Assembly (NCBI GenBank): GCA_003427395.1
Contig: BFEA01000017.1
Span: 328,017 to 391,120 of the forward strand
Source: Chara braunii
Taxonomy: Eukaryota; Plantae; Charophyceae
DNA length: 63,104 bases
Direction of reading: 5' to 3'
The stretch's first letter is position 1. Each line of letters starts with the position of its first letter. Positions 5,835 to 56,009 of this stretch are shown piece after piece. A model generated the notes under the pieces. It ran no database searches, was not told the origin of the DNA, and saw nothing but the letters and a program-made list of their open reading frames with translations. The translations under genes and the position numbers were made by a program.

Positions 5835-5846
5835 GTTCCAATACCA
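5835..5846 (-). promoter_or_regulatory. Primer-binding site, tRNA-iMet-like (TGGTATTGGAAC)
   Basis: Lies 2 nt from the LTR end (minus strand ...TGTAACA-AT-TGGTATTGGAAC); 9/12 match to the canonical TGGTATCAGAGC. Confidence 0.75.
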
Positions 5847-5848
5847 AT

Positions 5849-13739: not shown

Positions 13740-13801
13740 TGCCTACATCACATCCTAAGGAAAGTGATAATATACACTGGTCTCATAGTTGCTATTGCTA
13801 C

Positions 13802-13803
<2 letters not shown>

Positions 13804-13835
<32 letters not shown>

Positions 13836-15060: not shown

Positions 15061-15491
15061 GGTTGTCATTGTAGGTTATGACTCCTATCCATATGACAAA
15101 GCCTGGAGTTCGGGTCCAGCCATGTTATGGAGCTTGCCGCTAAGGGAAATGTCAAGGGAGGAAGGCACTTCCTGTCCGTCAGAACTAGGTTGGTCAGTAC
15201 TGGGGAGAGTTGTGGCGCCCTGTTACCCTAGCAGAAGGGGGTATGAGATCAAGTGAGTTATGGTACGAGGACTGAAAGCCTGGACCGACATTCCGTCTGT
15301 TGAGGGGGGGAGTTTTGGATAGTAGGCAGTTTTAGTTTCAACCCCCCGCTCTCATATTTTCCAAGCCTTCTCGGATTTTTTCTGAATTTTACCCTATCTC
15401 ATGAGGAAAGTCTTGAGAATGCCCTAGGATTCTGGGCACCTCTTGCAACTCATTTTAGGTTTTCTTAATGCTGTTATATTCATGGATCTGC

Positions 15492-15492
<1 letters not shown>

Positions 15493-15529
<37 letters not shown>

Positions 15530-16840
15530 CCCTTCCCCCATACAAGAAGCCCGGGCGACTGCTAGGGATGCTGATATAATCAAACAGCACTAGCAGTTCC
15601 GGGATGGCTCCATCTATTGGTGGGGAGCAACACCTGCTGGAAATCGGGTCCAACGTCCATGTGAAGCACATTTGAATTGTAGTTACACAGTTGAGAGTCA
15701 CCATATGAGCATGTGAAATCAATCTAATTGTGAGAAACTAGTGTACATGTGGGTGTGGTGAGGTGAGCTGTCATCTGCCCGCACACCTATTGAACCTATG
15801 TGCAGTTACCATGACGTCTGTGCCAGCTGACGGTTATGCTGTAGCGGGCTGTTGTTCTGGCCAGCAACCAATTAATCCTAATGAGTGTCTATGCATTTAC
15901 AATGCACACTGTACTGGCTATTAGTTGAGATGCAGTCTACTGTACACACTGTGTACTGTCTATTAGTTGCAATGTAGTCTACTGTACACCTAGTACACTG
16001 TACTGGCTATTAGTTGCAATGCAGTCTACTGTACACACTGTGTACTGTCTATTAGTGGCAATGTAGTCTACTGTACACCTTGTACGCTGTACTCATTGGT
16101 TATTATTCAGTAGATGACAATGGGAACCGAATCAACTATAATCCAATCAAATTGTGATAGGTCAGTCTGCATGCTGTTTACAGTAATCTGTTTGTCTATG
16201 CTGTTGCGAAAAGCTGTGAGCTTATTGTTGTTGCACATCGTCTTTCCATGACGCCCAACCCCCGGCCGGNNNNNNNNNNNNNNNNNNNNNNNNNNNNNNN
16301 NNNNNNNNNNNNNNNNNNNNNNNNNNNNNNNNNNNNNNNNNNNNNNNNNNNNNNNNNNNNNNNNNNNNNNNNNNNNNNNNNNNNNNNNNNNNNNNNNNNN
16401 NNNNNNNNNNNNNNNNNNNNNNNNNNNNNNNNNNNNNNNNNNNNNNNNNNNNNNNNNNNNNNNNNNNNNNNNNNNNNNNNNNNNNNNNNNNNNNNNNNNN
16501 NNNNNNNNNTCGGTTGACAGCCACGGTTGCCATTGCAGGTTATCGGGGTGGTGTAGTGTGCACAGCCTGCCGTTTGGGTCCACCCACTTCATCCGGAAGT
16601 TGTCGAGCATATGTCGCCTCTTAGGTTCTTCTGTCTCATTGCGGAGGCCAGATTGTAACTCCTTCCAGGCTGATTGTGTTTGACAGAATATTGTGTCGGC
16701 GATCGTTGCTCTCGTTTGCAGAAAGCCATAGGTATGCTGACTCCTCTCATGGGCGCACCTCATTCGCCAAGCTGCCATGAGTAGGGCCAGACGAGAATAT
16801 TGGAACAGGTTCAACATAAATTGCGTCCACTGCATTCCTT
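15493..16840 (-). mobile_element. 5'-truncated LINE: poly-A, 3' motif, ~43-bp minisatellite (15900-16090), N-gap, ORF2 C-terminus
   Basis: Motif at 15607-15658; WTQFMLNLFQYSRLALLMAAWRMRC is homologous to 8462-8782. Confidence 0.78.
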
Positions 16841-18444
16841 CTAGGGGGAGTACTGCAAATAGAATAAAAATCCAGACCAACGAACAATTACCCATCCAAA
16901 CGAACAAACCAGATACAACCTGCAACTCTAAAGTTATCAACAAACACACCACAAAGCAACCAACAACCAGCAAACACCATTGAAATGAACACCAATTTTA
17001 CCAACGAGCCAACTACTCAAGCGACCACAAAACCTCACCAACAACAAATCCTGACTAAGATTCATTGCAAACTGGTCACTGTCGATCAAGTAATCCAGCA
17101 CTCGTAAGGCTACCCTGGTTGAAAAGGGGCAGAGGAGGTCATGAACCCAAATCATATGCGCAATGGAAGATAAGGGTTCTTAACATCCCATGCCAGACTG
17201 CAGAGCCAGTATCTATAAACTCGTTTGCCCAACCCTCTCCAAAATATGTTGATCAGTTTCCTGAGATGGTAAAAATCTCGTCGCTCCGGGCAGTTCATAT
17301 ACAAAATCTATATAGGTGAATCCGAGAGTCACACTTCACAACAATCACCACGACACCAACCCTAATTAAAAATTATCACAACCCTATTTATCGAACCATG
17401 ACCGGTACTACTCTATACTAACAAGACTCGGCCTGACAATTAGAATCTAGGAGAACACAATCATCTATACTCACCACATTGAACACAATGCTTGCAGTTT
17501 AGGGAAACACAGTCAATGATTTGTAAGAGCCCCAGACATAAGAAAATCTTGAGCAACACCTCGCCCGAAGTAGGAGCAAAGGCAACAGTCGACAACCCCG
17601 CTCACAGCTTAAAGTCCGTTTTCAGTGACGGTGGACGATACCGACGGCATGAAATATGTCATCTATCTCCTGAAAGTCGGCGTTTATCGATGCACTCTCG
17701 TCCTTCATCTTCAACTCTTCATCCAGATAAAATTGCATCCACTCCAGCAACGCAATCGTTCTCCGTATTTATAATCAGCGGGCAAAACCCCTGATCAGGT
17801 TGTAATACACGATGCAAAGATCTTGCCCATTGACCGACCCCACATCTCTCTCCTTCCTTTGGCAGCCAATCTAGGATTACCAACTGTCGTCGGCCAAAAT
17901 TAGGCTATGGTAGGTGCATGGTTGTGCCCCCTTGAAGCGGCCTCCACCTCAGCGTCCACATGCTCTATCGCCTCTCTGCCTTCGCCATACCCAACAACAA
18001 GTGCTGGCTTAGCGCGATCCCCCATTGTTGTGCATCCTATTAGTGACGTGCTAGCGCATCGTTACCACTACGCTAGTGCGTCCGTGCAGCGTTTTTCGTA
18101 AACACCCTACTTTTTTTTAGCTCTACCTTGTTTACGGCCTTCCCTCTTGTTACAGTCTCGTCCTTTTTTTTTTTTTTTTTTTTTTTTGCAAGCGGACACA
18201 TAAGGCCCAAACATTTTATTTTTGCCAAGCCACCTTGGAACCAATGAACTTTAAGAATTATCCCATTGTCCCACGTTTTACTTTTTTTTTTTTTTTTTTT
18301 AAGGCTCATTTTTTGAAGCCCAACCAATTCAATTACCTGTCGAATAGTGGTGGTTAAAGAAAAAGAAAAAAAAAGAAATGTTCTGGCAATCATTGAAAAC
18401 CGGACCTGCTGTTGAACTAACTACCCTGCTATTAGTGGGGTTGT

Positions 18445-18600
18445 TTTTTTTTTTTTTTTTTTTTTAAAGCTAAAGGCTCCATCTTTTGGTGGGAAGCATC
18501 ACCTGCTGGAAAACGGGTTCATCGTCCCTTGAATACATGAAGTAGTATGAATGATATGTAATGTTAGTTTGTCGGCAGTTTGGTTGAGTTTGTCGAGACA
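18445..18600 (-). mobile_element. Non-LTR 3' end (poly-A plus conserved motif)
   Basis: T-tract at ~18445-18465, motif at 18476-18528; the 5' boundary is undefined. Confidence 0.7.
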
Positions 18601-19794
18601 TTCTCACCCTTCTGTGAGGGCCAGATATGTACCGTAACGAGAAGAAAAAAAGAAAGAAAGGGGCAGCGGAGCGCTACCGGAAGCGCTCCTCCGCCCGACG
18701 TTTTGACGCAACGGCAGACTCCTTGGTGAGGGTGAGAAACAAAAAACGGTCGGGGCGCCATGATGGCAGTTTCGACGCGAGGACAAGAGTGCAGGGCGAG
18801 AGTACAGCAGATGGATGATGAGGTGGGAAAGGGATCGTGGGGCATAGAGGAGCAGGCTAGTGGTGTCCGGGCGTTGCTGAAGGTTCTCTTGTTTGTTGTT
18901 TCTGTCACGTGCTTGCATGTTTGAGAAGAAGAACACAGGGGCAACGTGTCTCGTATCATGGTCTGGTTGGAGAGGAGGAATGTTGCGGGGGGGAGTAAGG
19001 GGAGGCAGGCGGGGTTTCATGGGCTAGAGGGAGAGTATTACAAGAAGGAATGGATGGAGGAACGTAGAAGTAAGGTTGTTGAAGACATGTCTTCTTTAGG
19101 CGGGCGACGTCTGCGACGATGAAACCTCTTCATCTCTTTGAGCTACCTGCGAGGGGCGGCTGGCAGACTCAGCGATTTAGTCTCGTAAAGTGGTTTGGAT
19201 TGTTGTGATGATAATCCTAGCTACGGTCCTGTTATCTTCATCGTTCGGTCCTTTGGGATGGTTGAATAGTTGTCAGCCACAGGCGGCCGAGTTACTTGAG
19301 AGTCGATGAAGCAGGACTCTGAGGTGAGGTTTGGAGAGAGAGGTGGGTGCGCTTAGGGATTGTCAAGGGTAAGTTGTGTTCTTCCTCTTCACGTCTTGTA
19401 GTGATGATTATGTGATGACCCTGATGGGACTCTTAACGATGTGATTCCTAGATAGTTTTGTTTGGTTCAATACCTATTAGTCTTTCTAACCTTGAATTCT
19501 AGATATGCAACAAAACTATAACCGATAATTCTGATTCTGAGGTTTGAAAATCAAGATTAAGTCTAACCTATATTTGTTTGACCTAGTTTGATTGTCCATT
19601 TCTTTCATATTTCACATCATTAGCCGTATCGATTGTCGTATGTTTGGTTGTTGAATTACTTCCTGGGCAATACTCTTAGCCTGAGATTTGTAAATCAGAG
19701 GTTGGACACCTCTGATTTCTTAAAAGTAATTTTCCAATCTTAACTCAATCTCGTTTGATCTTCTGATTTGTATCGATGCTTAAATTCATGAGGT

Positions 19795-19797
<3 letters not shown>

Positions 19798-19826
<29 letters not shown>

Positions 19827-22800
19827 NTTTAACAGTTAAGGGGGGCCTCCATCTATTGGTGGGGAGCAACACCTGCTGGAAAACGGGTCCAGTGTCCCTT
19901 ACATCGACCAAAGATTGAAATCATCTGGAATTGTCTGGGACATAGTGGTGGAGAATTTCTGCCGGCATTGATTACCCTGGAGTCCAGGGGATCGACCGAG
20001 CAGGGTGTTGGGAGAATGGGCAGACCTCTTCGCCTGAATTCGGCGCCAGATTCGTCACTTATGCATTAGTCCTTCCTTCCCCCTGTGGTGTAGCTATGTC
20101 GCAGTTCATGAACTCAGATTGAAATGAGATTATTAATAGAACCGAAGCTACCATGCAACTGCCAAAAGGACTTTTGCTTCTACTCTTGCCTCTACAGTCT
20201 GACGTCCCTCCCTCCCTAGGGGGTTTATCGTTGAATTGTCCCTAGGCTGCCAGATGTGACCCGTGCGTGTGGTCGTGTTCGGGGGGCACCGGACTGCCAC
20301 CTCTTTTCCTTTATGTGACGTACTCAGTCAGGGAAAGTGGGTGGGGCGGGAAGGGGTCCGGGAAGGTAGCAGGGGGGCATAGGGGAAATGAGGGTTCAAT
20401 ATTCAGCTAGTCTTTAAACAGCAGTTTATAGTCCCTCTTCCTTTCTAAGTCTTGGTGGCCGTCTAAGCTGTCGTCGTCCCCGCTCCATTTGACTTCTACT
20501 ATCCATCCTCCCCTTACCCCTCCTAACCACTCCTGGCAGAAGGAAGTGATTGCTTTCTTGATGTCCTTTTTCTGTCGGCACAGGTCCAGTTGTGGCTTCA
20601 AAGTTTGTCATTTTTGTGTTATTTCCATCTGGATCTGTTGTTTTATTTGTTCCATGATTTCTGTTGCATCTATTTGGATTTTATCTAGAGCAAGCAAGCA
20701 TCATTGCCACCATAAGGCCCATAACACTGTCTGTCTCCCTAATCTGAACATATTGTCTTCGAAGGTGGTCGCCAGTGACCTGCCAGTATCGTCTGCCATG
20801 ACCAGGGCCAGGGGGATGAGGTTCCCATCTTCCTCCAGATACGTTCCCAACTTGTCCAAATGAACTGGGCAATCGGGCACTGCATGAACACGTGTTCGAT
20901 TGTCTCGGCCCTCTTGTGTGATGGGAAGCAATTAGAGCAACGTTTGCACCATGGTAACAATTCCCCCCTCTGTTCCAAGTGCGTACGGTCAACCAGCCAG
21001 TTATTCGTGGGCAGGCAACGATGAGCTATCTGCCATTGCAAGGAATTGATTTTAGCTGGTCGGGACTTCCTCTCCTGGAACCAGCGGATGGGTTTGAGAA
21101 GATTGATGTCCACATTTAGATGTCTGGCCCAACGGTCATTTATTTGGCCCTCAGGTGTCATTTAGGCCGTAGCATTTTGTAAGTGGATTTGACTGTCAGT
21201 TTGTGTAAATAAAGTCATTTCGGGGTATACCTTGATTGTCCTTGTAGGAGTTTCCAACGTCACTCTTCCGGGTTAAAAGGCAGGTCCCGAATGTCTTTGT
21301 GTGGATAGAAGGTTGACCATCCCTTTCCTTCATCCAGCACTCTGATTCTGATTACCTCTGTTTTGTCCACCCATTGAAGGGGTCTCTACTTTCTTGGAAA
21401 GTGCCCTTGTGTCCTACAGTGTAGTATTCTGTCAAGGTTTTTTGTGTGTCTGTCATATGTACTCTACCAACCTTTCCTGTTAGTCCAATGCGGGCTACCC
21501 AGTCCCATTCTTTTATTGATGGTCATTGTCTCAGTATTTGGTACCATGCCAAGGGGATACTTTCAATTATCTGATGTAAGTGACGCTCTGCGTGATGACA
21601 GTATCTGAGTGTTGCTCTCAGTTGTTCTATCCCCTTCCAGTTTTTTCTCTCGCAGTCTCATAGGTCCCCTACTCGAAGGATCCCCCGTTTTACCCAGCCT
21701 TCCCATGAAGAAGCCGAGCACATCATTACCCGTCCTTGCGTGTCTGTGATCCCTCTGTTCCCAAAGAGGGGCTGGCGGAAGACCTCCTCCCAACGGTCCG
21801 GGTCTGGTCTATCAGGAAGCGGGAGTCTGCGCCAGGTTTTAAGTAGGTCCGGCCATAACTCATCTTCTTGCCGTCCCGTCTGCTCCCCTCCGTATTGCTG
21901 GTCTGGCAGCCTCCTCGGTAGCCCCCGCGGGATTGCCCAGAACCTGTCGTCTATCCATCTCAGCGAGTGGGTCTCTGGGGGGGTTTCCGGTGCTAGACGG
22001 GACAGGTGTTCTAAGGCCAGGGGGGTCCAGGGGCTTCGGGCGAGAAGATCAATTTTTCGATCCACTGAAGCCGCAACGCTTGGCTTTGTATGGCCGGGTC
22101 GATGATCCCTAGTCCACCGCCTACATTTGGTTGTGTGACTGAATCCCATGCTACCCTACTGATCACGTGGGTGCATTCGCTGTCTCCTCGCCAAAGGAAG
22201 GCGGTTGCCTTGGATTTCAATTCTTTTAACGCCCTTTTGCTTAGGGGCCAGAGAAGAGATTTATACCAAAGGGATGCAAAGACCACATTGTTTAGAATCA
22301 GGGCCCGCCCAAAGATTAACGTGTGTTTGTTTTTCCATTCAGACAATTTGCTCAAGGTCGGGATGCTGATCCATGCATCATTTGTGGTTGGTTTACCTTG
22401 TGCGGTCATGGTTATCCTTAGAATTCGTAGGGGTGCCTCCAGCGGTAACCACCTAATTCTTGGTGTCTTTGGGGGCTGGCCGCCTTGGTAGTGGATCCAC
22501 CAGCCTTGTGTTTTGCTGCCCCAGTTTATTTTCATATCAGAGATTTGTGCGAATTTGTCCATCATGTGGTGAATTTCCTCCATATTTTGTCGAGTTGCCT
22601 CCACCATTATCGTTAGGTCATCGGCAAACAGGGAGCATACCGGGACCGCTTCTTCAGGGATGTGGGAGACCCGGATTCTAGAGATATCCTTCTTTGCTCG
22701 CAAGTTTGCCGTCAGGGCTTCTATAATGATCAAAAATAAAAAGGGGGCGATAGGATCCCCCTGACGTACCGACCGTTCCAGTCGAATGGGGGGTGTCAAT

Positions 22801-23545
22801 GACCCATTGACCTGTATGCATGTGGTTGCGTTCTGGTGGAGGATTCTGACCCATCTTCTGAAGTGCGGTCCGAAATTCATCTTCTGCAGACATTTTTCAA
22901 GAAAAAGTCAGTCTACGTGGTCGTAGGCCTTCTCAAAGTCTATGAAGATGATCGCGGCGTTGTGCTGGGAGTGCCTGGTTAACTGTAGTATTTCATGCAC
23001 CAGCAAAAAATTTTCCTGTATGTTTCTATTCTGCATGAATCCAGTTCGAGACGGGTGAATAATGTCCACCAGTACTGGAATCATCCTATTGGCCAAAGCT
23101 TTGGCTAACATCTTGTAGACGATTGTGAGTAACGTAATTGGGCGATAATTTCTGATGTTTAGTTTGTCCCCCTTTTTATATAGTGAGGTCAGCACCCCTT
23201 GCCCTACCATCAGCGCATTTCCAAACCTCGTTATAGTACTCCATTAGATCTGCGCTCATAAAATCCCAGGAGGTTTCCCAAAATTCTTTAGGGAGACCGT
23301 CCATTCCGGGCGTTTTTTCTTCCTTCATCTGTAGGAGTGCAGTCCATATTTCTTGTTTGGAGAGGGGGGCCTCCAATTGATCTCGTTGTTTCTGGGAGAG
23401 TCTTTTTTCCATGGGGAGTAGGAAGTCGTCTATCATTCTGTGTCGTGTACCGTTGTCTGCGATATCAATGTGGGTTGAGAATGGATCCTTGAAGAAGTCC
23501 CGTGTGATCTTCATGCAGCGGGTTGTTGTCAACGTTGGCATCCCA
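19798..23545 (-). mobile_element. 5'-truncated L1/Tx1-like LINE (related subfamily) with decayed RT and C-terminal CCHC
   Basis: T-tract at 19798-19830, motif at 19845-19898; KTPGMDGLP, NYRPITLL, DFEKAYDHVD, RQGDPIAP, LFADD, CKRC...EHVFMQC. Confidence 0.92.
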
Positions 23546-33680: not shown

Positions 33681-33787
33681 TATCCATCATTCAAATGCAT
33701 CCTAGGCAAACTATTGGGGTTCAACCTCCCGATACGTCGGTGAAAGTCCGACAAAATAGTCTGGCACAATCCGAAGTGTGGGGGTCT

Positions 33788-36432
33788 ACAACACTCTACT
33801 CTGCTGTACACTACTCTTCTCTACAACGCTCTACGACACTCAACGACACTCTACTTTGCTCTCCTCGACTCTGCTCTACAACACTCTACTCTACGACACT
33901 CTACTCTACGACACTCTACAACACTCTACTCTACTCTACTATACTTTTTATTTCTCTCTTCTTCGACACTCGATTGTACTCTTCTCTACAATACTTTACT
34001 CTTTTGTACTCCACTCTACTCTACCACACTCTACCACACTCTACCACACTCTACCACACTATACCACTCTCTACTCTACATATCTCTACTGTACGACTAC
34101 TCTACTCTACTCTACTGTACGACAATCTACTCCACTCCACTGTACTCTACTCTACATAACTTTATGGTACGACTACTCTACTCTACTATACTTTATGACA
34201 ATACTCTACAACACTCTACGATACTTTACTCTACGAAACTCTACTCTACGATACTCTACGACACTCTACTCTACGACAGTCTACTCTACTCTACGACAGT
34301 CTACTCTATGACAATTTACTGTACTCTACGACACTCTACGCTACTTTACGGCACTCTACTATACTCTACTATACTCTAATTTACTCTACTCTACAAGACT
34401 CTGCCACACTCTACTCTACTTCACTATACTCCACTCTACTCCACCCTACAATGCGACACTTTACTCTACTGTACTTTACGACACTCAACTGTACCTACTC
34501 TACGCTACTCTACTCTACTCTACTGTACTCTACGACACTCTATTCTCCTCCACTCTACTCTACGACACTGTACTCTACTCAATAACAATCTACTGTACTA
34601 TACTATACGACACTTTATGACAGTCTACTCTGCTCTACTCTTCTCTACTCTACTCTACTCTACTCTACTCTACTCTACTCTACTCTACTCTACTCTACTC
34701 TACGATACTATACTATGCTCTACGACAATCTACTCTACTATACTCTATGACAGTTTATGACACTCAACTTTACTTTACTCTTCTTTACGACACTCTACTC
34801 TCCTCTACTCGACTCTACGACACTTTACTCTACTCAACAACAATCTACTCTCCTAGGTTATACGACACTTTATGACACTCTACTCTACTCTACTCTACTC
34901 TACTCTACTCTACTCTACTCTACTTTACTCTACTCTACTCAGAGTCTACGCTGCTCTACTCTACTCTACTCTACTNNNNNNNNNNNNNNNNNNNNNNNNN
35001 NNNNNNNNNNNNNNNNNNNNNNNNNNNNNNNNNNNNNNNNNNNNNNNNNNNNNNNNNNNNNNNNNNNNNNNNNNNNNNNNNNNNNNNNNNNNNNNNNNNN
35101 NNNNNNNNNNNNNNNNNNNNNNNNNNNNNNNNNNNNNNNNNNNNNNNNNNNNNNNNNNNNNNNNNNNNNNNNNNNNNNNNNNNNNNNNNNNNNNNNNNNN
35201 NNNNNNNNNNNNNNNNNNNNNNNNNNNNNNNNNNNNNNNNNNNNNNNNNNNNNNNNNNNNNNNNNNNNNNNNNNNNNNNNNNNNNNNNNNNNNNNNNNNN
35301 NNNNNNNNNNNNNNNNNNNNNNNNNNNNNNNNNNNNNNNNNNNNNNNNNNNNNNNNNNNNNNNNNNNNNNNNNNNNNNNNNNNNNNNNNNNNNNNNNNNN
35401 NNNNNNNNNNNNNNNNNNNNNNNNNNNNNNNNNNNNNNNNNNNNNNNNNNNNNNNNNNNNNNNNNNNNNNNNNNNNNNNNNNNNNNNNNNNNNNNNNNNN
35501 NNNNNNNNNNNNNNNNNNNNNNNNNNNNNNNNNNNNNNNNNNNNNNNNNNNNNNNNNNNNNNNNNNNNNNNNNNNNNNNNNNNNNNNNNNNNNNNNNNNN
35601 NNNNNNNNNNNNNNNNNNNNNNNNNNNNNNNNNNNNNNNNNNNNNNNNNNNNNNNNNNNNNNNNNNNNNNNNNNNNNNNNNNNNNNNNNNNNNNNNNNNN
35701 NNNNNNNNNNNNNNNNNNNNNNNNNNNNNNNNNNNNNNNNNNNNNNNNNNNNNNNNNNNNNNNNNNNNNNNNNNNNNNNNNNNNNNNNNNNNNNNNNNNN
35801 NNNNNNNNNNNNNNNNNNNNNNNNNNNNNNNNNNNNNNNNNNNNNNNNNNNNNNNNNNNNNNNNNNNNNNNNNNNNNNNNNNNNNNNNNNNNNNNNNNNN
35901 NNNNNTACGACAGTCTACGACACACTACGACACTCTACAAAACTCTACTCTACTTTACTCTACTCTACTCTACTCTACTCTACTCTACTCTACGACACTC
36001 CACTCTATTATACTCTACTCTACGCCACTGTACGACACTCTACTCTATTCAACTCTACTTTACGGCACACTACTCTACTCTACCCACTTTACTCTCCTCT
36101 CCTTTCCTCTTCGCTACGCTACTCTACTACGATCCTCTCTACTACATTTTACTTTACTCTAAGAAACTCCTACAACACTCTACTCTACTCTAAGAAACTC
36201 TACTACACTTTACTCTACTCTTTTCTACGACACTCTACTCTACTCTTCTCTACTCTACTCTACTCTACTCTACTCTACTCTACTCTACTCTACTCTACTC
36301 TACTTTACTCTACTCTACTTTACAACATTCTAGTCTACACCACTTTTCTCTATGACACTTTACTCTACTCTACTCTGCGACACTCTAATCTACTATAATT
36401 TACTATAAGACACTCTACTTCACTCTACGACA
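33788..36432 (+). repeat. (CTACT)n / CTACGACACT satellite containing a gap
   Basis: Directly visible pentamer array with 10-mer variants. Confidence 0.97.
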
Positions 36433-37004
36433 CTGCAATCACATCAAAGATTCATCCAGAAGTCCACGCGCTACACGGGGTCAACTTCAACCATTCCTCG
36501 CACTCATACCCCTCGCTTTAGCCATACAAGCCTCACTTGTGCAACTCTTAAATAAATACTCTGTACTTTTGTTGGATGACCATTCAATAAAGTCCGGGTA
36601 AAAATACAACAAAACAATTCAAATCTCAAGGCTAAAGCCTTTAGGTTGAGTGACAGGAGTGAATTGAAGTTGAATCGTAAACCGACGAATCGGCAACCGA
36701 TCTGTTATCAAGGATAACAGAAGATGACCTTTGTAGGATCAAGCTGAAACTAGTCCAAATCCTGAATCAAACGACCAAGAGGACCTGTAACACAAGACAG
36801 GGCAATCCCCAAGCTGAACTCATAAGTGTATGGAGAATACAACTCCATAACACATTCTCACCCAAGATCCTTTAAATTGACTAAACCCTGAACCTACCTT
36901 TAAGCAGTGCCCAAGGCAAAGGTAGACCCTGGCATAATCCCCCCTATACAGAGTGGACCGCCAAAATCGTCACCTGTCAAAACATAATCTATCTCCTTTA
37001 AACT

Positions 37005-37330
37005 AAGAAAATTTCGGCAGCGCTTCCCGTAGGAAAAGTGTCTTTTCAAAATTTATATCAACCCAAATATTAAACCAAAACTAGCATTTGACTTTCCAAA
37101 ATTCAATTTTTGTCCAACTCCCTGAATTAGCAAAAATTTGGGCAGCACTCCCTTTAGAAAAGGAGACTTTCCATATTTTTACTAAGTCATATATAAACTT
37201 TAGACAAGTTGAATTTTGACAAGTCAAAATTTGACTAACTCCTCGGATTTGCAGAAATTTTGGCAACGCTTCCCGTAGAGAAAGTAGCTTACCAAAATTT
37301 ATACAAAGCCAAGTATAACAAAAAATCCCA
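37005..37330. repeat. Three diverged ~123-bp tandem units
   Basis: aaattt.ggcagcgcttcccgtag.aaaag recurs at ~37010, ~37135 and ~37256. Confidence 0.8.
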
Positions 37331-37589
37331 GAAAATGCGAGAGTTGATCTAAGTAAAAAAAACTTAGCTCAGAAAATGCAGGAATCGAAACTAACTCCTA
37401 TCGCTCTAGCACGTGGTGAGCCTCTAAAGTAACTACCTGTCAAACTGAAACTCAGACCAAGTAGTAGCCTCACTCGGTCACAAGCAGGCCAAACCACAAA
37501 GGTAAGTACTCTCACCAACCCCATGTTGACTTAGCAAACATTAGTTCATAGTTTTTCAATTATTTAACCCTTTACTCCCGGCTTACATA

Positions 37590-38235
37590 GGGCATTGGGA
37601 TTGGTCATTTATCTTAGAAACAATATCAACCCTCTGCCTTAATTATACACGAACAGGCTGCACAACTACTTTTCTCTTCATTGGGGCACATGACTAAGCC
37701 ATTCATCTTAGAAACCATGCTTAGTCGCCCTGGACTATTTAAGTAACCAATTTATATATACTTCTTTGAACTTAATCTTCAAGAATTAGTGTAAGACTGA
37801 GTCATTCATCTTAGAAACAATACTCAGTCGGCCCAAGTTACCTTCACTTATAACTCTTGATTATACCCTCTTCGCTTGTGATAAGGCTATAATCAGACCA
37901 TTCATCTTAGAAACAATGCCTGACTAGCCTTGTTCGTATATAAGTACATATATATACAACATTATAGAGAATCATATTCCTTCGTTCTCATTATGGTCCC
38001 GAGGCCTCAGACTGAAACCATTCATCTTAGAAACAATGTTTAGTCCTCTGGCCCTGAATCCTCCCTCAGAATAAAACAATCAAGGAGAGATGAGCCATTC
38101 ATCTTAGAAACAATGCTCAGCTCCCCCTTTTTCAGTACACAAAAAAACAGAGTACCCTGGGTCTGACCCAGAGACTGTTCAGAAACCACCCAAGTAAACA
38201 GCGACCAGACCATTCATCTTAGAAACCATGAATGA
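37590..38235. ncRNA. Array of 7 hairpin units with a conserved 19-nt core CATTCATCTTAGAAACAAT and unit-specific stems (putative structured RNA or ssDNA array)
   Basis: Cores start at 37606, 37700, 37803, 37899, 38019, 38096 and 38211. Flanks differ between units but are self-complementary within a unit. The repeat itself is certain; function as an RNA is inferred. Confidence 0.7.
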
Positions 38236-41200
38236 CCCTATAAGACCCATTCAAGTGCAAGCAAAACTGCCTTCCTCCCAGCCTTCCCCCAGATGCATCC
38301 CTTTGTGACAATCTGCTTTCAGACAATCAATAACTGAAACTGCCATTATACAAACATTCCTTTAGTCAGTCTGATTTGTGTCCTGAAAGTCAACTCAAAG
38401 TCAAAGTAAGGGCGACATACAATGCAGTCAGCCAATACATAGGGAGAGGTATAGATAGGGGTTAGACTGGGTTTATAAAGGAAGCAATGTTTACCTCTGA
38501 GTTCCCTGCCTCCAGAACTCCTCCTTAGTTCCGGCAGGGCTCCCACAATCGGTGGGTTGACTCCCCACAGAGCCTTGATGCGGACCTACGGGTTGCAATC
38601 CCGCCTGCCGCCTTCCTCTCAGAACCAATAGACTAGATTTAGAGTAAGAAGGGCAGAAAGAGAGTCATTAAGTCTCTCGAATACAAGGATGGTGCTCTCA
38701 GACTCGCGTGAAAGGGCCTTGTTGCCTTGATGCACCTGAGGGCCCCGCAATGGCAGCCGAGGTGCGCTGCAGCCTGGTCAAACCGATGTCAACTATCAAT
38801 TGTTGACCTCTTGGCAACTCGCCAGTTCCCAGCAACAACCGCACTTGCCGGCCAAATCATGTCCTCAAGTTACACTCCCTCCTGCCTGGCTAAGACCCCA
38901 CACCTCAGCCTAGAGCGACCGCTTCCGGAATAAAGCGCGCCTCCTCCTCGTGCTCTTTGTTCAAACTCAGCACTACAGGGCGAGCAGCATGCACATCAGT
39001 CGCGATGGACAGCCAGCTCCACAGCCATGCTTAACGAGCCCGGGCACTATATCGGCCAATACATAAACTCCTGGGCCTACCGACCGCTTGCCTCGTCCCA
39101 CACAGTTTCCGTCCCTGCAGAGTTCATCCAAGGCGCCGACGCTACCTGCCAATCAAAAGTGTCGCCTCGGTCAAGTTCTCCAAGGCCGGTTACTAACTGT
39201 CAACCATCGAGTATGACATATAGTCACACCCGGACGGAAGCAACGAGCACACCTTCGGCGTCGTGCACCATCGCCCACTAAGTCAAAGGGGGAGCTTCTA
39301 ATCTACCCCTCTCCTACGTGGCCATTCAATCAGGCCGAAGGTCTCATCGCTAGCGAGCCCAATCAAGCAAATCACTCTGCCGACCGAGAGTGGTCACGCG
39401 CGCAGAGAGGTAGAGACAAGTTGCCCCTTTCCGACAGAATGAGCCCTGCACTGGTTAACGGCCAGCCCCTAGGCCCGGGAAAAGATCTCCCCTCTGCGAA
39501 CCGGGCATACAACACGGGAGTGAATCTTCGGTATATGGCGGATGGCTTCACTTCTTCCCAATAGCAACCGTAGCCCCTCTCTACGGACGCGGTTTCCTGA
39601 CAGACAGGCAAGTTCGATCTCTTCCTCCTCTCTCTCTCTCTCTGTATGTGCTCGTGTGTGCTCTCTCCTTCTCTCGCTCACGGACACACTTGGCCGCCCA
39701 TCACGTTGAGCCCGTCCAGAGTCTGAGAACGAACTTCTCGAGGAGGAGAAAGCTGTGGAGGAAAGATCGTAGCCGGGGCGATTAGTGATTAACGGGGAGG
39801 AGTGCGGTATCTCGCTGAGCCTTACGTAAACGATGGTAGAAACAACGATCTACCCGGCAATACTTTGCAAAGTGAGGACGACCCTTTCGCTAAAATACGA
39901 CTAGGTGCATTCGCACCCCGTTGATCCCTCTCTCTCGGGCGCAGCTCGATTCTTCCTACCTCAAAAACTACAACTTCTCCCCCGAATCCGGCTTCACTAC
40001 CCAACTCCCAGCTTCCTAAAACCTCAGTACAAACCTTCTCCCCACCTAATTTCATCCAAGATCAACTGAAATCTCCATTTCCTATCTCTGCCACCTCCTA
40101 CCTCCGCGCACTGCCTTTTCTCAATAACTCCTATCTCACTGATATAACACCAAAACTGACCTCAGATTCGAGGTCGCCCATCCCCAAAACCCCAAACTCG
40201 CAACTTTCCCTGTCTAAATCCGTCCGCTAACGAGTACCAAACACTCGTTTCCCCACTGCGCCTCGCCTGCCTCCTCACCATCTCTACCTTCGAATGCACC
40301 TGGCCCAAGCGCCTGTCCCGGTTCGCCCCCTTCAATCACTTCTTTCATACGCAACCCCTGCCACCAACCCGGCCTGCCCAGTACTCGAATGTGACATCCA
40401 ATGCTCCCATCAGACTCGCCACATCCTCAAACCCCAGATTTGAACCTTCGTTTGCCCGCTGTCGTAAGGGATTGAGCGTATTAGAAGTCTCGTTGTCTGC
40501 CATAGCCGCTTCCCGCCTTTCCCCTGCGCAGTCGTTTTCTAATCTAACTCTTATTTTACTAACTTACTACAGAAACTAACGTAACTATCTAACTCGCCTG
40601 GGGCCAAAACCCCGGGATTGCCTTTCTCCCCTCTCGATTCTATCAAGAATCGAGTGATAGCACGACTTTTCCTTTCACCTCAGTCCCCCTCCCGCCATAG
40701 CCTCACGCACTAACGTTCTCTTCTACCCCCTAACCCACTAACCTTCTATTAATTCCGACCTCATAACCGTACTTGCCTTCTCCTAAAACCCCCTGCTAGC
40801 ATCTACCCTCGCTCGATTCCACTAAGAAATAGGCCATTATTACTAATTTTTGCCCCACTATGGCCAACATCCGCCACCTCCCTTGCTGCACGTAACTGGC
40901 GCGGAACCGCGCCAGGTTCATTCCTTCGTCTTCACTTTTCCCCTCTCCTCTGTCGTTCTCGTCTGCGCCTCACAGGCCCACTGCCGGTCGCCTGCTACCT
41001 GCTGTCCGCACTTCGTTGTCTTCCCTCTCCCTCAGCTCCCGATGACACCCCGCTCCCACAACACTTTCAACCCCACTGCTCCTCGCTCCTGCCTATCTCC
41101 TCCGTTTGCTGGTACCCCGCTGCTGCCTACTTCGCTTTCTTCCTCTTCTCACCCCCTCAGCGCTAGATGCCTGCTGCGCTGCTGCACCGTACACTACAGC

Positions 41201-42549
41201 CGCTGGCCCCTCCGTGCGTGCTCCTGGAGCGGTTCCCCGCCCAGGTCCAGCTACCCGATTTTGCCACCCCGTCGGCCTCCTTTCACCCCGACAACGTCGG
41301 CTATCCTTCGGGAACCTCCGGAGGGAACTTGCTACTAGGCGGTTCGATTAGTCTCCGCCCTGTACCCAAGCCTGCCGACTAATGTACCCACTGCCCCACT
41401 GCCTTGGTGGCCCGACCCTATTGCCCGCCAGTCCAGAAGGCGGATGGCGCCCGAGCGGGCGAATCATGTTCAGCCGCCCTGTTAGCCTGCCCCAAAACGG
41501 CCGCCGCGTGCCACCTACACTTCAACCGTGGCGGCATTGTGACTCGTAGGAAAGCCATGGGCCTGCTGCGTGCCTGGCAGCGTAAATAGGTGAAGCGGGC
41601 CACGGTGCAAATCTTAGTAGTAGTAGCAAAGATTTTAACGAGGACCTTGAGGACCAAAGTGGAACATGCTCCCGCGGGTGGGCTGCTGCCGCGGCCCTCC
41701 CTCGGTGCCCCGGCAAAAGTCCTACCACTTGATTCCCTTCCGGCCCATGTGACAGCAAAAGGCAAGGGGGATAGTCTTATAAGACCATCAACCCCTCAAG
41801 CCCTTTTTGTCACGCTCTGCTCCTCCACTACATGTTGTTGGCCTCAATCCCTGCACCTGCTGCATACCAGTCCGATGCCATAACTTATAGGGCTACGCCC
41901 AAGCCTAGTATCAGCAGGCTCGGCTCTCCTAATAAAGAGATAGCACCCGGCCTTTGGGGCCAAGGAACTGCCGCATGCCACTTCCCGGCCCGTACTTCGC
42001 ACAAAAGGCCACCGAAAAATCCGCGCCGGCCTACCCAAACCGTGTCGTAGCCGCCCCCGCGCACCATCCTATGCCGCCCCATTTACCGCACGAGGTCGCG
42101 CTGTCACTGTCGATGCCGTCGTCCTCGCATGCGCGCTCGCCTCGGTCAAACGTACCAATCAAAGGAAAATATCCTTAATTCCTACTTAATCAAGAATAAA
42201 TAAAAACAAAGTTAACCCGACTGGCATCCGCGCCGGCTTTATAATCAACGACAAGGAAAGAAATCCCGCGCGCCTTAAACCCTGTGCGCCCACGCACTCT
42301 CTACTTCTAGACCTCATGACCAACCTATAGTCACCACATTGCCGCAAGTCGCGCGGCCTTCTCAACAATTCCAGGTCAAACTTGTTTCCTGTCACTTGCA
42401 AAAACCAGGGCGGATACCCTTGTAAGGGTATTCGCGCTGACATCGTGTCTGTGGACGACAACGGAAAAGAGGCAAACCACCAGAGAGCGTCAAGTAACAG
42501 TTAAACCATAACGCAGGCGGCAACGAAGCATCAAAAACTCAGGCGGCAA

Positions 42550-43125
42550 ACATTTCGTTCAACACGTCTGTCACATCACGCCATTGGAAGACCTCGAAGT
42601 TCGGATCCCGGCGAACTTCGAACGCGAAGACCTTTAATAACCTCCAACCTGCAACACGAACAATCTTTATAAGGGGACACACGTCATGCAGCCGGACGAC
42701 AACCACATTGGAATTTTCGAAGCACGGATGCCGGAGGGATTTGAACATGGGCATTTCCCGCAGGAATCAGCAGGCGGTAATGTTCGAAGTTTGCGCTGGA
42801 TGGGGACTGTCCCCCGCTTAACACTCGAAAATCGGACAGGCCAGCACGCTAAGTTCGCCGGGATCCGGAGTAGAAGAGGGTGCGAGAGAGAGAGAAAGAG
42901 GCAGCCCATGCAGCCTGCGTTCCAGAACCGTGCACGAGCAAACACACTCCGCAACTGCATATGAGCAAAACGAGAAGTCGGAGTCGGACTCTCCCTGTTG
43001 CCGGGTGGTTCGTGCGAACCATCGGCACCACGAAGACCAAAGACAAGCCGACGCACATCCCGAAACGTGAAGTTCGCCGTGATCCAAACTTCAGGACAAT
43101 GCGACAGGCAGAGACGGCGTCAGAG
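42550..43125. repeat. Imperfect inverted-repeat (MITE-like) segment with palindromic GAAGTTCG...CGAACTTC motifs
   Basis: cgaagttcggatcccggcgaacttcg at ~42595 is the near reverse complement of tgaagttcgccgtgatccaaacttc at ~43068; partial copy at 42851. Confidence 0.55.
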
Positions 43126-43417
43126 ACACACGATGCGTAAGTCTGTGGTTGTAAAACTCAGCCTGGAACCGGGAAGGAGACACAGACATGAAAATCTGGT
43201 TAAACTCAACAAGGAACCGCAGCCAAGTGTTCAATCAAAAAAATTCTCACACCCTAGCCAATTACCATCAACAACAAACTTCCATAACCACACTACCCTA
43301 AAGTATCACTAAAGCACGAACATACCCTAATTTAAAGGTAGTGATTCTAGTGAAGTATTAGAACAAGTCTCAAGTATTAGAACAAGTTTCACATATCCAC
43401 CAGTTCTACAATCTTAA

Positions 43418-43511
43418 CTAGCTAAGCGCCCGCAGTGTGGGCGGTGCGGGCCATGCCCGCAAAGATAAGAAATGTTGTAGGCAAACTGACACGGACCACT
43501 CGCATAAACCG

Positions 43512-43549
<38 letters not shown>

Positions 43550-43655
43550 ATCACAGGCTAATACAAAATATCATAAAACTGGCTACCAAGTTTGAGTTTC
43601 TATTGACAAATAGCTTCGCGCTCGTGGTGTAGGCGGTGCGGGCTACGCCCACAAC
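43418..43655 (-). mobile_element. Two tandem Helitron-like 3' termini
   Basis: Minus strand reads GCGGGC-ATG-GCCCGC, CGCCC-ACACTGC-GGGCG, CTTAG, CTAG|T, ending at 43418. A second, degenerate copy at 43611-43653 ends in CTAT. Confidence 0.55.
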
Positions 43656-43689
43656 CAAAACCACCAAAACGGTAAAGAAAGTATCATAG

Positions 43690-46086
43690 GGTAGAGTGTC
43701 GTAGAGTATCGTAGAGTCTCACAAAGTAGAGTAAGGTAGAGTGGAGTAAAGTAGAGTGTTGTGGAATACAGTGTTGTACAGTAGTGTTGCAGAGAGTGTT
43801 GTCGAGTAGAGTAGAGTAGAGTAGAGTAGAGTAAAGTAGAGTAGAGTAGAGTAGAGTAAAGTAGAGTAGAATGAAGAAGAATAGAGTACAGTAGAGTAGA
43901 GTAAAGTGTCTGCGAGTAGAGTGTCATAGAGTAGAGTACATTGACGTAAAGTACAAAAGACTAGATTGTCGTAGAGTAGAGTAGAGTGTCGTAAAGTAAA
44001 GTACAGTAGAGTAGAGTATCATAGAGTAAAGTGTCATAGAGTAAAGTGTCATGAAGTATCGTAGAGTAGAGTAAAGTAGGGTACAATAGAGTAAAGAACA
44101 ATGTCATGGAGCAGAGTAGAGTGCCCTTGAGTGTCGTAAAGCAGAATAGAGTGTCGCAGAGTAGAGTGGAGTGTCATAAATTGTCGTAGAGTATAATATC
44201 GTAGAGTAGAGTATTGTCTCGTATAGTAGAGTAGAGTAGAGTGTCGTAGCGTGTCCTAGAGTAGAGTAAAGTTTCGTAGAGTAGAGTATAGTGTCGTAGA
44301 GTAGAGTAGAGTAAAGTAAAGTATCGTAAAGTGTCGTAGAGTGTTGTAGATAAGACAAGAGTGTCATAGAGTAGAGTAGAGTAAAGTAAAGTAGAGTAGA
44401 GTAGAGTAAAGTAAAGTAGAGTAGAGTAGAGTACAGTGTCGTTGAGTAGAGTACAATAGGGTGTTGTAAAATAGAGTGTTTTAGAGTGTCGTAGAGTAGA
44501 ATAGAGTGTCGTAGAGTATCGTAGAGTGTCGTAGAGTAGAGTAGAGTAGAGTAGAGTAGAGTAGAGTAGAGTGGAGTAGAGTAGAGTAGAGTAGAGTAGA
44601 GTAGAGTGGGTAGAGTAGAGTAGAGTAAAGTATCGTAAAGTAGAATAGAGTGTCGTACAGTACAGTGGAGTAGAGTGTCGTAAAGTGTCGTAGAGTAAAG
44701 TATAGTAGCGTAGAGTGTCGTAGAGTAGAGTAGAGTAGATTAGATTAGAGTAGAGTAGAGTAGAGTAGAGTAGAGTAGAGTAGAGTAGAGTAGAGTAGAG
44801 TAGAGTAGAGTAGAGTAGAGTAGAGTAGAGTAGGATAGAGAAGAGTAGAGTATCATAGAGTAGAGTAGAGTGTTATAGAGTAGAGTAGAGTGTCATAGAG
44901 TAGAGTAGAGTGTCAAAGAGTATCGTAGAGTGTCATAGAGTGTCGTAGAGTAGAGTACAGTAGAGTACAGCAGAGTGTCGTAGAGGAGAGTACAGCGCCA
45001 TACAGTAGAGTATCGTAGAGTAGATTGTGATAGATTAAATTGTTGTAGAGTAAAGTGGAGTAGAGCAAAGAAGAATATAGTAGAGTATAGTAGAGTAGAG
45101 TAGAGTAGAGTAGAGTAGAGTGTTGTCAAGTAAATTAGAATAGAGTGTCGTAGAGGAGAGTAAAGTATCATAGGGTGAAGTAGATTGTCGTATAGTAGAG
45201 TAGAGTAAAGTAGAGTAGAGTAGAGTAGAGTAGAGTAGAGTAGAGTAGAGTAGAGTAGAGTAGAGTAGAGTAGAGTAGAGTAGAGTAGAGTAGAGTAGAG
45301 TACTGTAGAGTGGAGCAGAGTAGAGTAGAGTAGAGTAGAGTAGAGTAGAGTAGAGTAGAGTAGAGTAGAGTAGAGTAGAGTAGAGTAGAGTAGAATAGAG
45401 TAGAGTAGTGTAGAGTAGTGTAGAGTAGAGTAGTGTAGAGTAGAGTGCAGTGTCACGAAGTAGAGTAAGGTACAATACAGTGTCATAGAGTAGAGTAGAA
45501 TAGAGTGTCGTAGAGTGTCATACATTACAGTAGAGTGTCACAAAGTTCAGTAGAGTGGCGTAGAGTAGAGTCGCAAAGAGTGTCGTAAAGTAGAGTATGG
45601 TAGATTGTGGTAGATTGTGGTAGAGTAGAGTAGAGTAGAGTGTCGTAGAGTGTAGTGTCGTAGAGTGTAGTGTCATAGAGCGTTGTAGAGTAGAGTAGAG
45701 TGTCGTAGAGTGTCGAAGAGTAAAGTAGAGTCGAGTGTCGTAGAGTACAGTAGAGTGTCCGAGAGTATCATAGAGTAGAGTAGAGTGTCGCCGAGTAGAG
45801 TACATAGAGTGTCGCAGAAGAGAGCAGATTGTCGTTGAGAAGAGTAGAGCATCGTAGAGTAGATTGTCGTAGCGTAGAGTAGAGTAGAGTAGAGTAGAAA
45901 CTGTAGAGTAGAGCAGAATAGAGTAGAGGGTCACAAAATAGAGTAAAGTAGAGTAGAGTGTCGTACAATAGAATAGAGTAGAGTGTCATAGAGAAGAGTT
46001 GAGTGTCGCAGAGTAGATTAGAGTGTCGTAGAGTGTTGTAGAGTAGAGTGCCGTAGAGTAAAGTAGACAGTTGTAAAGTAGAGTGA
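43690..46086 (-). repeat. (AGTAG)n satellite, the reverse complement of the 33788-36432 array
   Basis: Directly visible. Confidence 0.97.
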
Positions 46087-47152
46087 TGTGGCTGCCTGCG
46101 ATTACGTACATATATGGTTGAGAGGGGCCCCACTGTGACTGTGAGAATTGATCGTCCTATATAAATAAGCCTTATGTATATATTTATATGTGCCTTGGGC
46201 ATGCGTGCAGCTTGTTGTGATCGTGCGCAAGGGTTGGCCAGATTATGGCTTGAGAGAAAAAAAAAGATCCCATTTTTTCCTTTGTTTTTTAAAGATTTTT
46301 ATGGTCGGACGTTGGTCCTGGGCTGGGATTCAAGGTCCTTGTCCAGGACATCCCAAACCCTAGATTCTGCAGGGAAGGAATCTTCCCCCGTGCAGAGCCT
46401 ATTTGCCTTGCTTGCCGAGACGCTCAGACCAAAGGCCGGAGGTCTCGCGGCGGCTGCACGACTATTCCTTTAGCCGTGCAATGTCGTGAAGGATTAGACC
46501 CTCACGACACTTTGAGTCTGACACTTGAGTGTCGTAAGCGGTACTCGGATCCACGAGGGACCGCTTGATTATGGATACTACATAGTACGCCATCATTGCG
46601 ACTGCTTGCGCACGTTTGCATCGCGAGTCGATATGAGATAGCCCTGCGTCCGCGCAGTTTTATACTAAGCCTCGCACGCGACGCTTATCCGGTTTTCGTG
46701 GCGGGAAGTTATGGGATGGCTACCAAGGGGCTAGGAGCGTTGTCGTGTTGTTCGTGTTGTGTCGTTTTGTATGGGTGCGTGTGTGTGTTTTATTTTTGTG
46801 TTTGTTAGAGTGGTGTGCGCGTGGTGTGCGGGATGCGTCCTAGTCGACCGACGACGGGCCGCGTTTGGGACTTCAGCCCCCCAAGATGTCGGTTTGCGTG
46901 CGGGTCCGATAGGCGTATTACCGCGCATACCCCCTATGCTACAACGAACGAGAAACGCCCTCAGCTGGTCCACCTCTGCAATTGCAACCGAGTAGCTTTC
47001 GTACTGTGGACTGGTAGCTCGGTGGGGATACGCCCACCGAAGGGAGGTGACAGCTCCCGTAAGGTGGAGGTAAGTTGTGCCTCGCGTAGGCCATATCTTG
47101 TCGTAGGGGCTCGCGAGAGGGGGGGGATCTGGGTTCCGGTGAAGCTACACAA

Positions 47153-52898: not shown

Positions 52899-53971
52899 GG
52901 TGGGGTCGTCTCGAACACGGAGGTCCTCGAAATATCCAGAACACATATTGCGGAAAGTCCCCGGGTTGACTACAAAACACAAGGATATGTTAAAGGCATC
53001 AGGGGATGATGTCGAGATCGGGAAGAAGGAGTACACCGTTGTCATTGAGGAATGTCTATCCCTTCTTGCCCAGAGAAAGGGACATATCCACGATCTGTGA
53101 GTAGGAGTCAGGCCATGTATGAGAAGTACTTAGCAACGCGTCATGCACCGGGGGACAATGCCTAGAACTCCGTTTCTCACTACCCCACGTGTCATTTGCT
53201 CGATGTTGTGCAGTGCGGGCCACAAGTGCAACACACGGGAAAAGGTTCGCTGTAGCGATTGCGCCTCTGAGCTTGCGGGTTTTGGACGACATTATACGAG
53301 GCTCGGTGCCACCTCACACCGTTCTCTCTATACTGGCCGATGGTCAATTCCGGATTGCAGCAAAAGATCTCCTCACCCTCTTGCATATCGATGGCAGGGT
53401 GAATGATGAGGTGGCCAATTTCTATATGGCGTTGTTGGGGTCGACTGCATGTGGGTCAGGTGACATCTCGTCAGACCTTCAAGTCTTCAGCTTTAATTCG
53501 TTATTTTTCTGTAAACTGCAACTTCAAGCACACGGTGGGGTGCAGAGGTGGACTAAAAACGTAGATTTGCTTCATTACGATATTATCTTCGTTCCTGTCC
53601 ACAACGATGATGATCACTGGATTCTCATTTCCGTCAACATGAGAGATGACGTTCTCAAAATTTTTGATTATTTTCCTCGCGTTGTAGTTGATGCAAGTTT
53701 TTACATTAGTGTTTTCGGGTTGATTATGTAGTATTTGGAACGTCAAACATCACATAGGCGGTCGGGTAGGAATTGGAAGTCGATATAGAAAAATGTTGTG
53801 GTGGATGGAGTTCCGAGACAAGTGGATGGAGCTAGCTGCGGGGTGTTCATGTTGATGTATGCGACGTTGTTGCAACGTGGAGATCGACTGCCTTTTCGGT
53901 TCTCTTGTAAAGATATTCCGCTTCTTAGATGACAATTAGCATCATGTATCTTAGAACATCATTGTCTTTGA
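52899..53971 (+). pseudogene. Ulp1/SENP-family (peptidase C48) protease exons
   Basis: VNDEVANFYM, FNSLFF, VQRWTKNVDL, IIFVPVH..DHW.L, KIFD, and past in-frame stops VPRQVDGASCGVFMLMYA (His-Asp-Gln-Cys retained). Plausible splice sites: AG at 52897-52898, GTGAGT at 53097, AG at 53213-53214. Confidence 0.9.
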
Positions 53972-54544: not shown

Positions 54545-55380
54545 TGAACAAGTATGGATCTCAGTGCCCTCATGTCGGGCGAGATGATGAGCGTGCCTGT
54601 ATGCGGAAGTCCGGATCTCTTCAACATCCAAACAACCGTCTCATGTGAGATGATGGCTGTACTTGCATAACTTACGGATAACCTAGTAAACGAAAAATTA
54701 ATGTGTTAACCAACGACGGTTCGATCATGACACCTTGCTCATCACATATGTAAGCTTTGAGTTTAACAAGTATGGATCTCAGCACACTTACGCCCACTGT
54801 CAGGGTCACAAGTCTTCTAAAAAAGTCCGGATCTCATCATACATCTAAACAATTGTCTTGAGCGAGACGAGGAACCTGCATGTGTAACTTTGGGATAACC
54901 GAAAGAATTATACTCTTCAATTCTATCTGATTACATTGCTAATTTTATTTACAAAGTTCAACAAGTATGAATGTCAGCAAACTTTCGCATTTAGGGCGAG
55001 TGGATGGGCATGCCTACGTGGAAACACTGCAGTCAAAAATGAATTCGTAAGATAGAGGACAGTGTCACAATATAACGTCTTTCATTACATTTATGAGATT
55101 GAAGTTTGACAAGTAAGGATTCCAGCACACTTCCGCACAGGGTTTCCTGTTTGGCGTGCCAATCGTTATTCGTTTATGAAGTTTGACTACTATGGATCCC
55201 AACACACTTCCCCACAGAATCACCAACACGTTTTTGAAGTTCAACAAGTAAGGATCCCAACACACTTCCGCACAGGGTTCCCGGGTGGCGTGGCTAACAT
55301 GTGTGGGTCTCAACACGCTTCCGCATTTGGGATTTCATTTATAAAGTTTCACAAGTACGGATCTCAGCACGCTTCTGCAT
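54545..55380 (+). repeat. Cluster of ~7-9 direct repeats, consensus ACAAGTA(T/A)GGATCYCARCACACTT
   Basis: Copies near 54548, 54766, 54961, 55109, 55187, 55244 and 55351, at irregular spacing. Confidence 0.8.
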
Positions 55381-56009
55381 GTGGTTAAGCCCTGGATGGG
55401 CATGCCTACGTTGCTTAGGCTGCAACCAGAAATGAATTCGTTAGAAAGAGGACACAGTATAATGTCCTATTTTAACGAATAACATGTTTCAATCAATCAA
55501 TCAATCAATCAACCAACCAATCAATCAATCAAGCAATCCCCCCCCCCAAAAAAAAAAATCAAACCAATCAATCAACCAATCAATCGATCAATCAATCAAT
55601 CAATCAATCAACNNNNNNNNNNNNNNNNNNNNNNNNNNNNNNNNNNNNNNNNNNNNNNNNNNNNNNNNNNNNNNNNNNNNNNNNNNNNNNNNNNNNNNNN
55701 NNNNNNNNNNNNNNNNNNNNNNNNNNNNNNNNNNNNNNNNNNNNNNNNNNNNNNNNNNNNNNNNNNNNNNNNNNNNNNNNNNNNNNNNNNNNNNNNNNNN
55801 NNNNNNNNNNNNNNNNNNNNNNNNNNNNNNNNNNNNNCATTTTTAAGTTTTTTTATTTTTTTTCAATGTGGGGGGGTGGGGCCTCGGGTGCGCCCCCGGA
55901 ATCCCGACCCCGACCTCCGGTACCCCCTCCCCCTCGCCCGCGGCCGCAACGGTCATGACCGCGGGCCCGCGGTCGACCGCATGGGCCGCGGTCATGCCCG
56001 CGGTGACCG

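Follow-up and report, generated by a model that had tools for sequence, protein, structure and literature searches.

Cis-acting RNA signals of retroelements include the TAR hairpins of HIV and BIV, the HIV RRE, the CTE of MPMV, the transport elements of MusD and IAP, and the psi stem-loops, which are structured RNAs situated in an LTR or leader or in an intron. TAR consists of a stem, a bulge or internal loop, a short upper stem and a hexaloop, and the RRE and CTE mark unspliced RNA. Little is known of how plant and algal LTR retrotransposons tell their own genomic RNA apart for export and packaging. Rows of hairpins with a constant loop and varied stems are familiar from engineered MS2 and PP7 cassettes and from bacterial CsrB-type sponges, which bind many copies of one protein. 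It is also well known that non-coding transposon DNA can hold multiple protein-binding motifs. Examples are the Su(Hw) insulator of gypsy and the VANC motifs of VANDAL transposons, the latter being subfamily-specific and co-evolving with an element-encoded protein; both act as double-stranded DNA and lack covarying stems. Finally, parts of three papers describe tandem-repeat arrays in Ty3/gypsy non-chromoviruses (Ogre, Retand and Athila) and in long LTRs (Retrosat2), and a title cited in the first of them describes Ogre as partially spliced (PMC3485330, PMC11963269, PMC7004042).

Here we describe a row of hairpins in a 63,104-nt stretch of the genome of the charophyte alga Chara braunii (contig BFEA01000017.1; hereafter the window). 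By analogy, the array appears to work like the retroelement cis-acting RNA signals, yet it matches no curated family.

Results

The original prediction described seven copies of a 19-nt core with only two variable positions. Core matching across the window reproduces this: the matches start at 37606, 37700, 37803, 37899, 38019, 38096 and 38211, giving core-to-core spacings of 94, 103, 96, 120, 77 and 115, and the only variants are at position 5 (unit 1) and position 17 (units 2 and 7). All seven lie on one strand within 37606-38229 and none is found elsewhere in the window, against an expectation by chance of 0.02. Tandem Repeats Finder reported no array at 37590-38235, and the units there are not alike over their full length in the head-to-tail manner of a satellite or retrotransposon tandem repeat. 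Three copies of the array were compared, namely that of the window, L001 (BFBZ01008522.1), which was found through an exact match to the core, and L028 (a Chara scaffold).

In transcript order on the minus strand, the array opens with unit 7 (38203..38237; core 38211-38229, hexaloop UAAGAU 38216-38221). A core-less perfect hairpin at 38155..38173 marks a degenerate eighth position, at which L028 bears a full unit. Unit 6 (38088..38122; core 38096-38114) is missing from L028, and is followed by unit 5 (38011..38045; core 38019-38037) and unit 4 (37883..37933; core 37899-37917). Unit 4 has an extended outer stem, and its flanks enclose a different inner stem in L001 and the loop CAAGCC in L028. 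The core of unit 3 (37795..37829; core 37803-37821) is identical in L001, and that of unit 2 (37692..37726; core 37700-37718) is taken out in both L001 and L028 by a 17-nt deletion. In unit 1 (37598..37632; core 37606-37624), one substitution breaks an inner pair.

Read on the minus strand, the window units fold as an outer stem, an internal loop (AUUGU over UG), a 3-bp inner stem and the hexaloop UAAGAU. The same architecture is common to all copies, with an inner stem of 3-6 bp and, once L028 is included, a loop consensus of YAAGNY. The flanks are specific to each unit and yet pair within it, as had been proposed: in the window alone, 85.9% of outer-stem cells are paired, seven of eight pairs vary on both sides, and none of 500 shuffles matches this. 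Covariation extends across genomic copies, a comparison that the original prediction had called for. For the outer stem of 14 units from the three copies, 87.5% of cells are paired and all eight pairs are changed on both sides (0/500 shuffles), and for the inner stem of 17 units (window and L001), three of four pairs are changed on both sides around an invariant T-A-A-G-x-T. Pairing in slid controls reaches at most 60%, and at most 51% for the 14-unit outer stem. Since the shuffles disregard relatedness among units and copies, 0/500 should not be read as a probability. AAG is kept in 23 of 23 units, against variation in both stems and in every spacer. At the apex there is probably a hexaloop, carried by a short stem. 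The fold first suggested, with a bulged C and a 12-nt loop, can form in the window core through three A-U pairs, but it shows no covariation and most L001 units cannot adopt it.

The functional strand of the hairpins is more likely to be the minus strand than the plus strand on which they were first read. Folding energy is lower on the minus strand for 7/7 window units and on the same strand for 15/15 further units (nine of L001 and six of L028), and the z-score prefers it in five of the seven window units. Outer-stem pairing over the 14 units is 87.5% on the minus strand versus 78.6% on the plus strand, the difference being made up of G-U wobbles (15 G-U/U-G cells). The minus strand of the array is G/T-rich, which by itself favours G-U pairs, and so this gap is partly compositional. 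Unit 7, which was thought to pair weakly, does pair on the minus strand through wobbles, its outer stem containing two G-U pairs and a 2x2 mismatch.

L001 and L028 retain the window spacers in the same order, and each position of the array can be aligned between copies in both spacer and outer stem. The spacers, described at the outset as largely unrelated, are indeed unlike one another within the array but are homologous by position between copies; being fixed in order, they are inherited, which rules out spacer acquisition. The core, in turn, is near-invariant within the window array as claimed, but varies across the repeat family. The apex is UAAGAU in all seven window units; in L028 it is UAAGCU in the first three units and CAAGCC in the last three; in L001 it is UAAGAU in two units and UAAGUU in eight, with several different inner stems. 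Apical sequence therefore differs between copies in blocks, the same spacers carrying different cores. Although the L001 contig comes from a metagenome collection, it carries the Chara repeat and is therefore probably algal DNA. Other single 19-mer matches in metagenome and viral contigs had no second core nearby and were taken as chance. About 400 kb of further Chara sequence, mostly introns, at eight loci (L022-L027, L029 and L030) yielded no copy of the repeat, and two near matches among them were also judged to be chance. In one of these loci (L027, from BFEA01002662.1), at its positions 3417-3707, we noted tandem 97-nt copies with a sequence resembling a transposase-library adapter, which are likely an assembly artefact.

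The array lies inside a dispersed, non-coding Chara braunii repeat of very high copy number, other copies of which occupy other loci. When the contigs of one DNA run were placed, together with RNA reads, on 36400-42300 (5,901 letters), summed contig depth over the array reached 10,000-20,000, rising to 29,000-112,000 across the flanks; unique contigs gave about 8-11. Summed depth is not a copy number but, read roughly, these values suggest that the repeat is present in thousands of copies and that fewer of these contain this variant of the array than contain the flanks. On the minus strand, window 36434-38800 and L028 run colinear, and patchy homology continues to about 41200, so the repeat spans at least 4.8 kb. 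The block of highest DNA and RNA depth, 38495..38760 (minus strand), is also the most conserved and is a probable exon upstream of the array. Upstream of it, 38760..41200 (minus strand) diverges fast, with patchy homology to L001 and L028 that is clearest at 38760-38915 and 40520-40830. Downstream of the array, a conserved part (36434..37590, minus strand) is cut at 36434 by an ACTCT satellite, and 46087..47120 on the plus strand is probably its continuation beyond the break, being homologous to L028 at about 6015-7055 (weakly over the first 400 nt, then strongly).

No domain was found by Pfam scans of ORF pieces of the repeat, including those of 38760..41200, and a length-limited search with two of its ORFs found no homologue. 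The conserved block is absent from the viral and prokaryotic genome collections. Rfam returned no match for the window, the array region or L028, with SECIS, IRE, hammerhead, snoRNA and retroviral elements among the models. In the window as a whole, Pfam scans of 40 ORF pieces recovered LINE, gypsy protease and Ulp1 domains only, in keeping with the earlier statement that there is no cas gene and no named family.

Several other features of the repeat and its surroundings deserve mention. The repeat looks split by an AGTAG/ACTCT satellite (window 33785-47120) with its 5′ part inverted: from 36434 upwards it lies on the minus strand, and 46087-47120 on the plus strand matches the sequence that follows the break point in L028. 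The left satellite contains an assembly gap. The downstream part holds three diverged ~122-bp repeats (37009-37325) that share a GC-rich motif, well kept in L028, and are possibly a second array. Just downstream of the hairpins, a 16-nt hairpin (37501-37516) lies within a 30-nt stretch that is identical in L028; each strand there offers donor-like sequences. A CG-rich stretch at 42596-43092, close to where the 5′ end of the repeat likely falls, contains nested inverted repeats of 17-24 nt. Elsewhere in the window, a decayed Ty3/gypsy element (1613-6563) with gag, protease and the start of RT on the minus strand lies between 227-nt direct repeats of 96% identity. The gypsy protease fragment has protein matches of up to 88% identity, and those that were looked up lie in GCA_003427395.1. 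LINE domains are found at 8807-9409, 10637-11308 and 22014-22880. Eight copies of a 67-nt motif are spread over 7421-29196, several beside poly-T tracts, and are probably LINE or SINE 3′ ends on the minus strand. A Ulp1 domain is confirmed at 53189-53728, and five dispersed copies of a ~49-nt motif follow its ORF (54756-55389).

The host repeat is probably the giant LTR of a retrotransposon. It is a dispersed, high-copy, non-coding repeat, as judged by depth, by the L001 and L028 copies and by the lack of an ORF homologue. No paired LTR in direct orientation was found; the window and L028 each contain a single copy, at loci that are rearranged or nested. Searches for matching ends (TG..CA) and a target-site duplication were without result. 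A candidate start of the LTR, and end of the element, at 38755 was rejected, its TG being unconserved between copies. In L028, homology to the window stops at about 7055 and is followed at about 7062 by a 17-mer that resembles a primer-binding site and which we take to fit the pattern of a tRNA 3′ end; no tRNA matched it, and no CA immediately precedes it. Some 3 kb past this site, from 10001 and on the same strand, L028 has a gag-like ORF with weak Pfam matches (E 0.006 and 0.03), which may belong to a nested element.

The RNA data comprise two oligo-dT runs, X6 and X7, whose library direction is uncalibrated. Nearly all reads derive from other copies of the repeat, those 99% alike to this one numbering 2/191 and 37/3944 in the two runs. 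In X6, depth over 38370-38763 is 20-23 in one direction versus 1.3 in the other, a signal that would come from minus-strand RNA in a library of the usual type. At 38493..38495 on the minus strand lies a sequence resembling a 5′ splice site, G/GTA, that is invariant in the three copies. Twelve X6 reads leave in register with it near 38500: their consensus runs for five bases ending in AG and departs at the G/GT of 38494. These junction reads agree with one another at only 0.62, their other side was searched for and not located, and the matches listed include no joint from the 38494 donor to internal acceptors. On passing the donor-like site, X6 depth drops from 20-23 to 1-2, the level also seen over the array. 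The array starts about 255 nt downstream of that site and lies upstream of acceptor-like YAG/GT sites near 36974 and 36785 that are retained in L028. The conserved donor-like site so close upstream, and the RNA reads that depart from it, make it probable that the array is intronic. In X7, both directions are present, with the opposite direction ahead over 36400-37580, left of the array. A TATA-like box at 38474 was considered as a conserved promoter and rejected, being absent from L028. Read ends do not pile up within the array in the oligo-dT runs, a library type that would miss small RNAs. Twelve X7 reads fall at 41540-41670, five of them starting at 41627; by eye, this stretch resembles decayed 28S rRNA, antisense to the repeat, and Rfam gave no report for it.

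Discussion

The conservation of structure in three genomic copies supports the suggestion that this is a selected feature in mobile eukaryotic DNA. Multivalent protein binding, which the original prediction had put forward among its options, is our preferred reading too: we hold at roughly even confidence that the array is a set of such binding sites which marks unspliced element RNA for export or packaging. In this view the array would serve a highly abundant Chara retroelement as a cis-acting RNA element, and it most likely sits within that retroelement's giant LTR. The element would be transcribed from the minus strand, and the donor at 38494 would place the array within an intron, such that only unspliced (genomic) RNA would retain it. 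Each hairpin may then dock a protein, which could be an element-encoded Gag or accessory protein or a host RNA-binding protein, and six to ten such sites would provide the avidity that licenses the RNA for nuclear export or packaging. Block-wise switching of the apex would reflect subfamily-specific recognition, with conversion between units carrying a change of apex through the array and selection then maintaining it. A more tentative extension, which we regard as doubtful, is that the array, a row of aptamer-like hairpins, forms a programmable RNA address, the apical code of which is rewritten as subfamilies split and is read by a co-evolving reader encoded by the element.

As in TAR, RRE, CTE and psi, a structure on one strand is conserved with covariation; the fold follows the order of parts seen in TAR, and there is a possible likeness to the RRE and CTE in the marking of unspliced RNA. 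The Chara array differs from all of these: it comprises six to ten discrete hairpins, set between unrelated spacers, whose outer stems vary freely and whose apex switches from copy to copy, and it has no sequence match to them in Rfam. It shares the layout of MS2/PP7 cassettes and CsrB-type sponges, but with another loop, and it is embedded in cis in a natural eukaryotic mobile element. The arrays of Ogre, Retand, Athila and Retrosat2 likewise sit in long non-coding parts of Gypsy elements, but as described in parts of those papers they are head-to-tail sequence repeats, whereas the Chara array repeats only a fold and an apex; a term search of one of them found no mention of hairpins or stem-loops (PMC3485330). 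In a literature search that covered few subscription journals, we found no description of hairpin arrays in retrotransposon LTRs and nothing relevant on Chara.

Alternatively, the hairpins might work within the nascent RNA and govern how the element is transcribed, spliced or silenced, rather than its export or packaging, whether in a TAR-like role, in splicing regulation or by recruiting an anti-silencing factor. We consider this rather unlikely. In its favour, the array lies between a conserved donor-like site and acceptor-like sites, X6 RNA falls across the donor, and the loops hold UAAG, which resembles short motifs bound by hnRNP-type proteins. Against it, no start site is mapped and the TATA-like box is lost in L028, and a conserved host splicing factor would poorly explain subfamily-specific switching of the apex.

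A role at the level of DNA seems improbable. Single-stranded hairpins could function in reverse transcription or integration (strand transfer, pausing, or the binding of integrase or a host factor), or the cores could be double-stranded binding sites similar to those of VANC or Su(Hw), with which the array shares the presence of several short motifs in non-coding transposon DNA. The array has little RNA coverage, and DNA hairpins tolerate G-T wobbles, as such a role would allow. However, double-stranded sites require no covarying flanks, the inner stem swaps all of its letters with pairs retained, and the one-sided bias in wobbles suits RNA better.

It is likewise improbable that the array is a mutational by-product, in which a single palindrome was long ago amplified in tandem, its arms corrected by template switching (as in quasi-palindromes) and its cores homogenised by conversion, all without selection. 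Units are freely lost (the core of unit 2, unit 6, and the core-less hairpin at 38155-38173), the contiguous blocks of core change resemble conversion tracts, and thousands of copies would supply many templates. Yet template correction gives perfect palindromes rather than a constant asymmetric internal loop and a constant hexaloop length, it leaves the 15 G-U/U-G cells on one strand unexplained, and the persistence of AAG in every unit while stems and spacers vary also argues against it.

The original CRISPR-like designation and its guide-RNA option, read as a precursor of guide or small RNAs with acquired spacers, are very unlikely to be correct, for although a constant core alternates with dissimilar DNA at periods of 77-120 bp, the repeats diverge beyond 19 nt where those of CRISPR arrays are identical over ~23-50 nt with near-constant spacers, the spacers are unequal in length, orthologous in L001 and L028 and without phage match, the core varies within the family, no cas-like gene or Rfam family accompanies this eukaryotic high-copy repeat, and no read ends pile up in the array (in libraries blind to small RNAs).

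The new elements here are the three-copy test of covariation, the comparison of strands, the presence of two loop codes within one copy, and a donor with junction reads. If the array were only a splicing or mutational feature, it would remain a specialist curiosity of Chara repeats. If instead it marks unspliced RNA, then it is a discrete and mutable signal with natural variants, and the question of self-recognition in these retrotransposons therefore becomes directly testable. Should the apical code prove to be an address, export or packaging by each subfamily would be confined to its own unspliced RNA, to the exclusion of parasites, and the array and its readers would constitute natural orthogonal RNA-protein pairs like those of MS2 and PP7. 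A co-evolving reader, if there is one, would demonstrate self/non-self discrimination among retroelement subfamilies and offer a source of orthogonal RNA tags.
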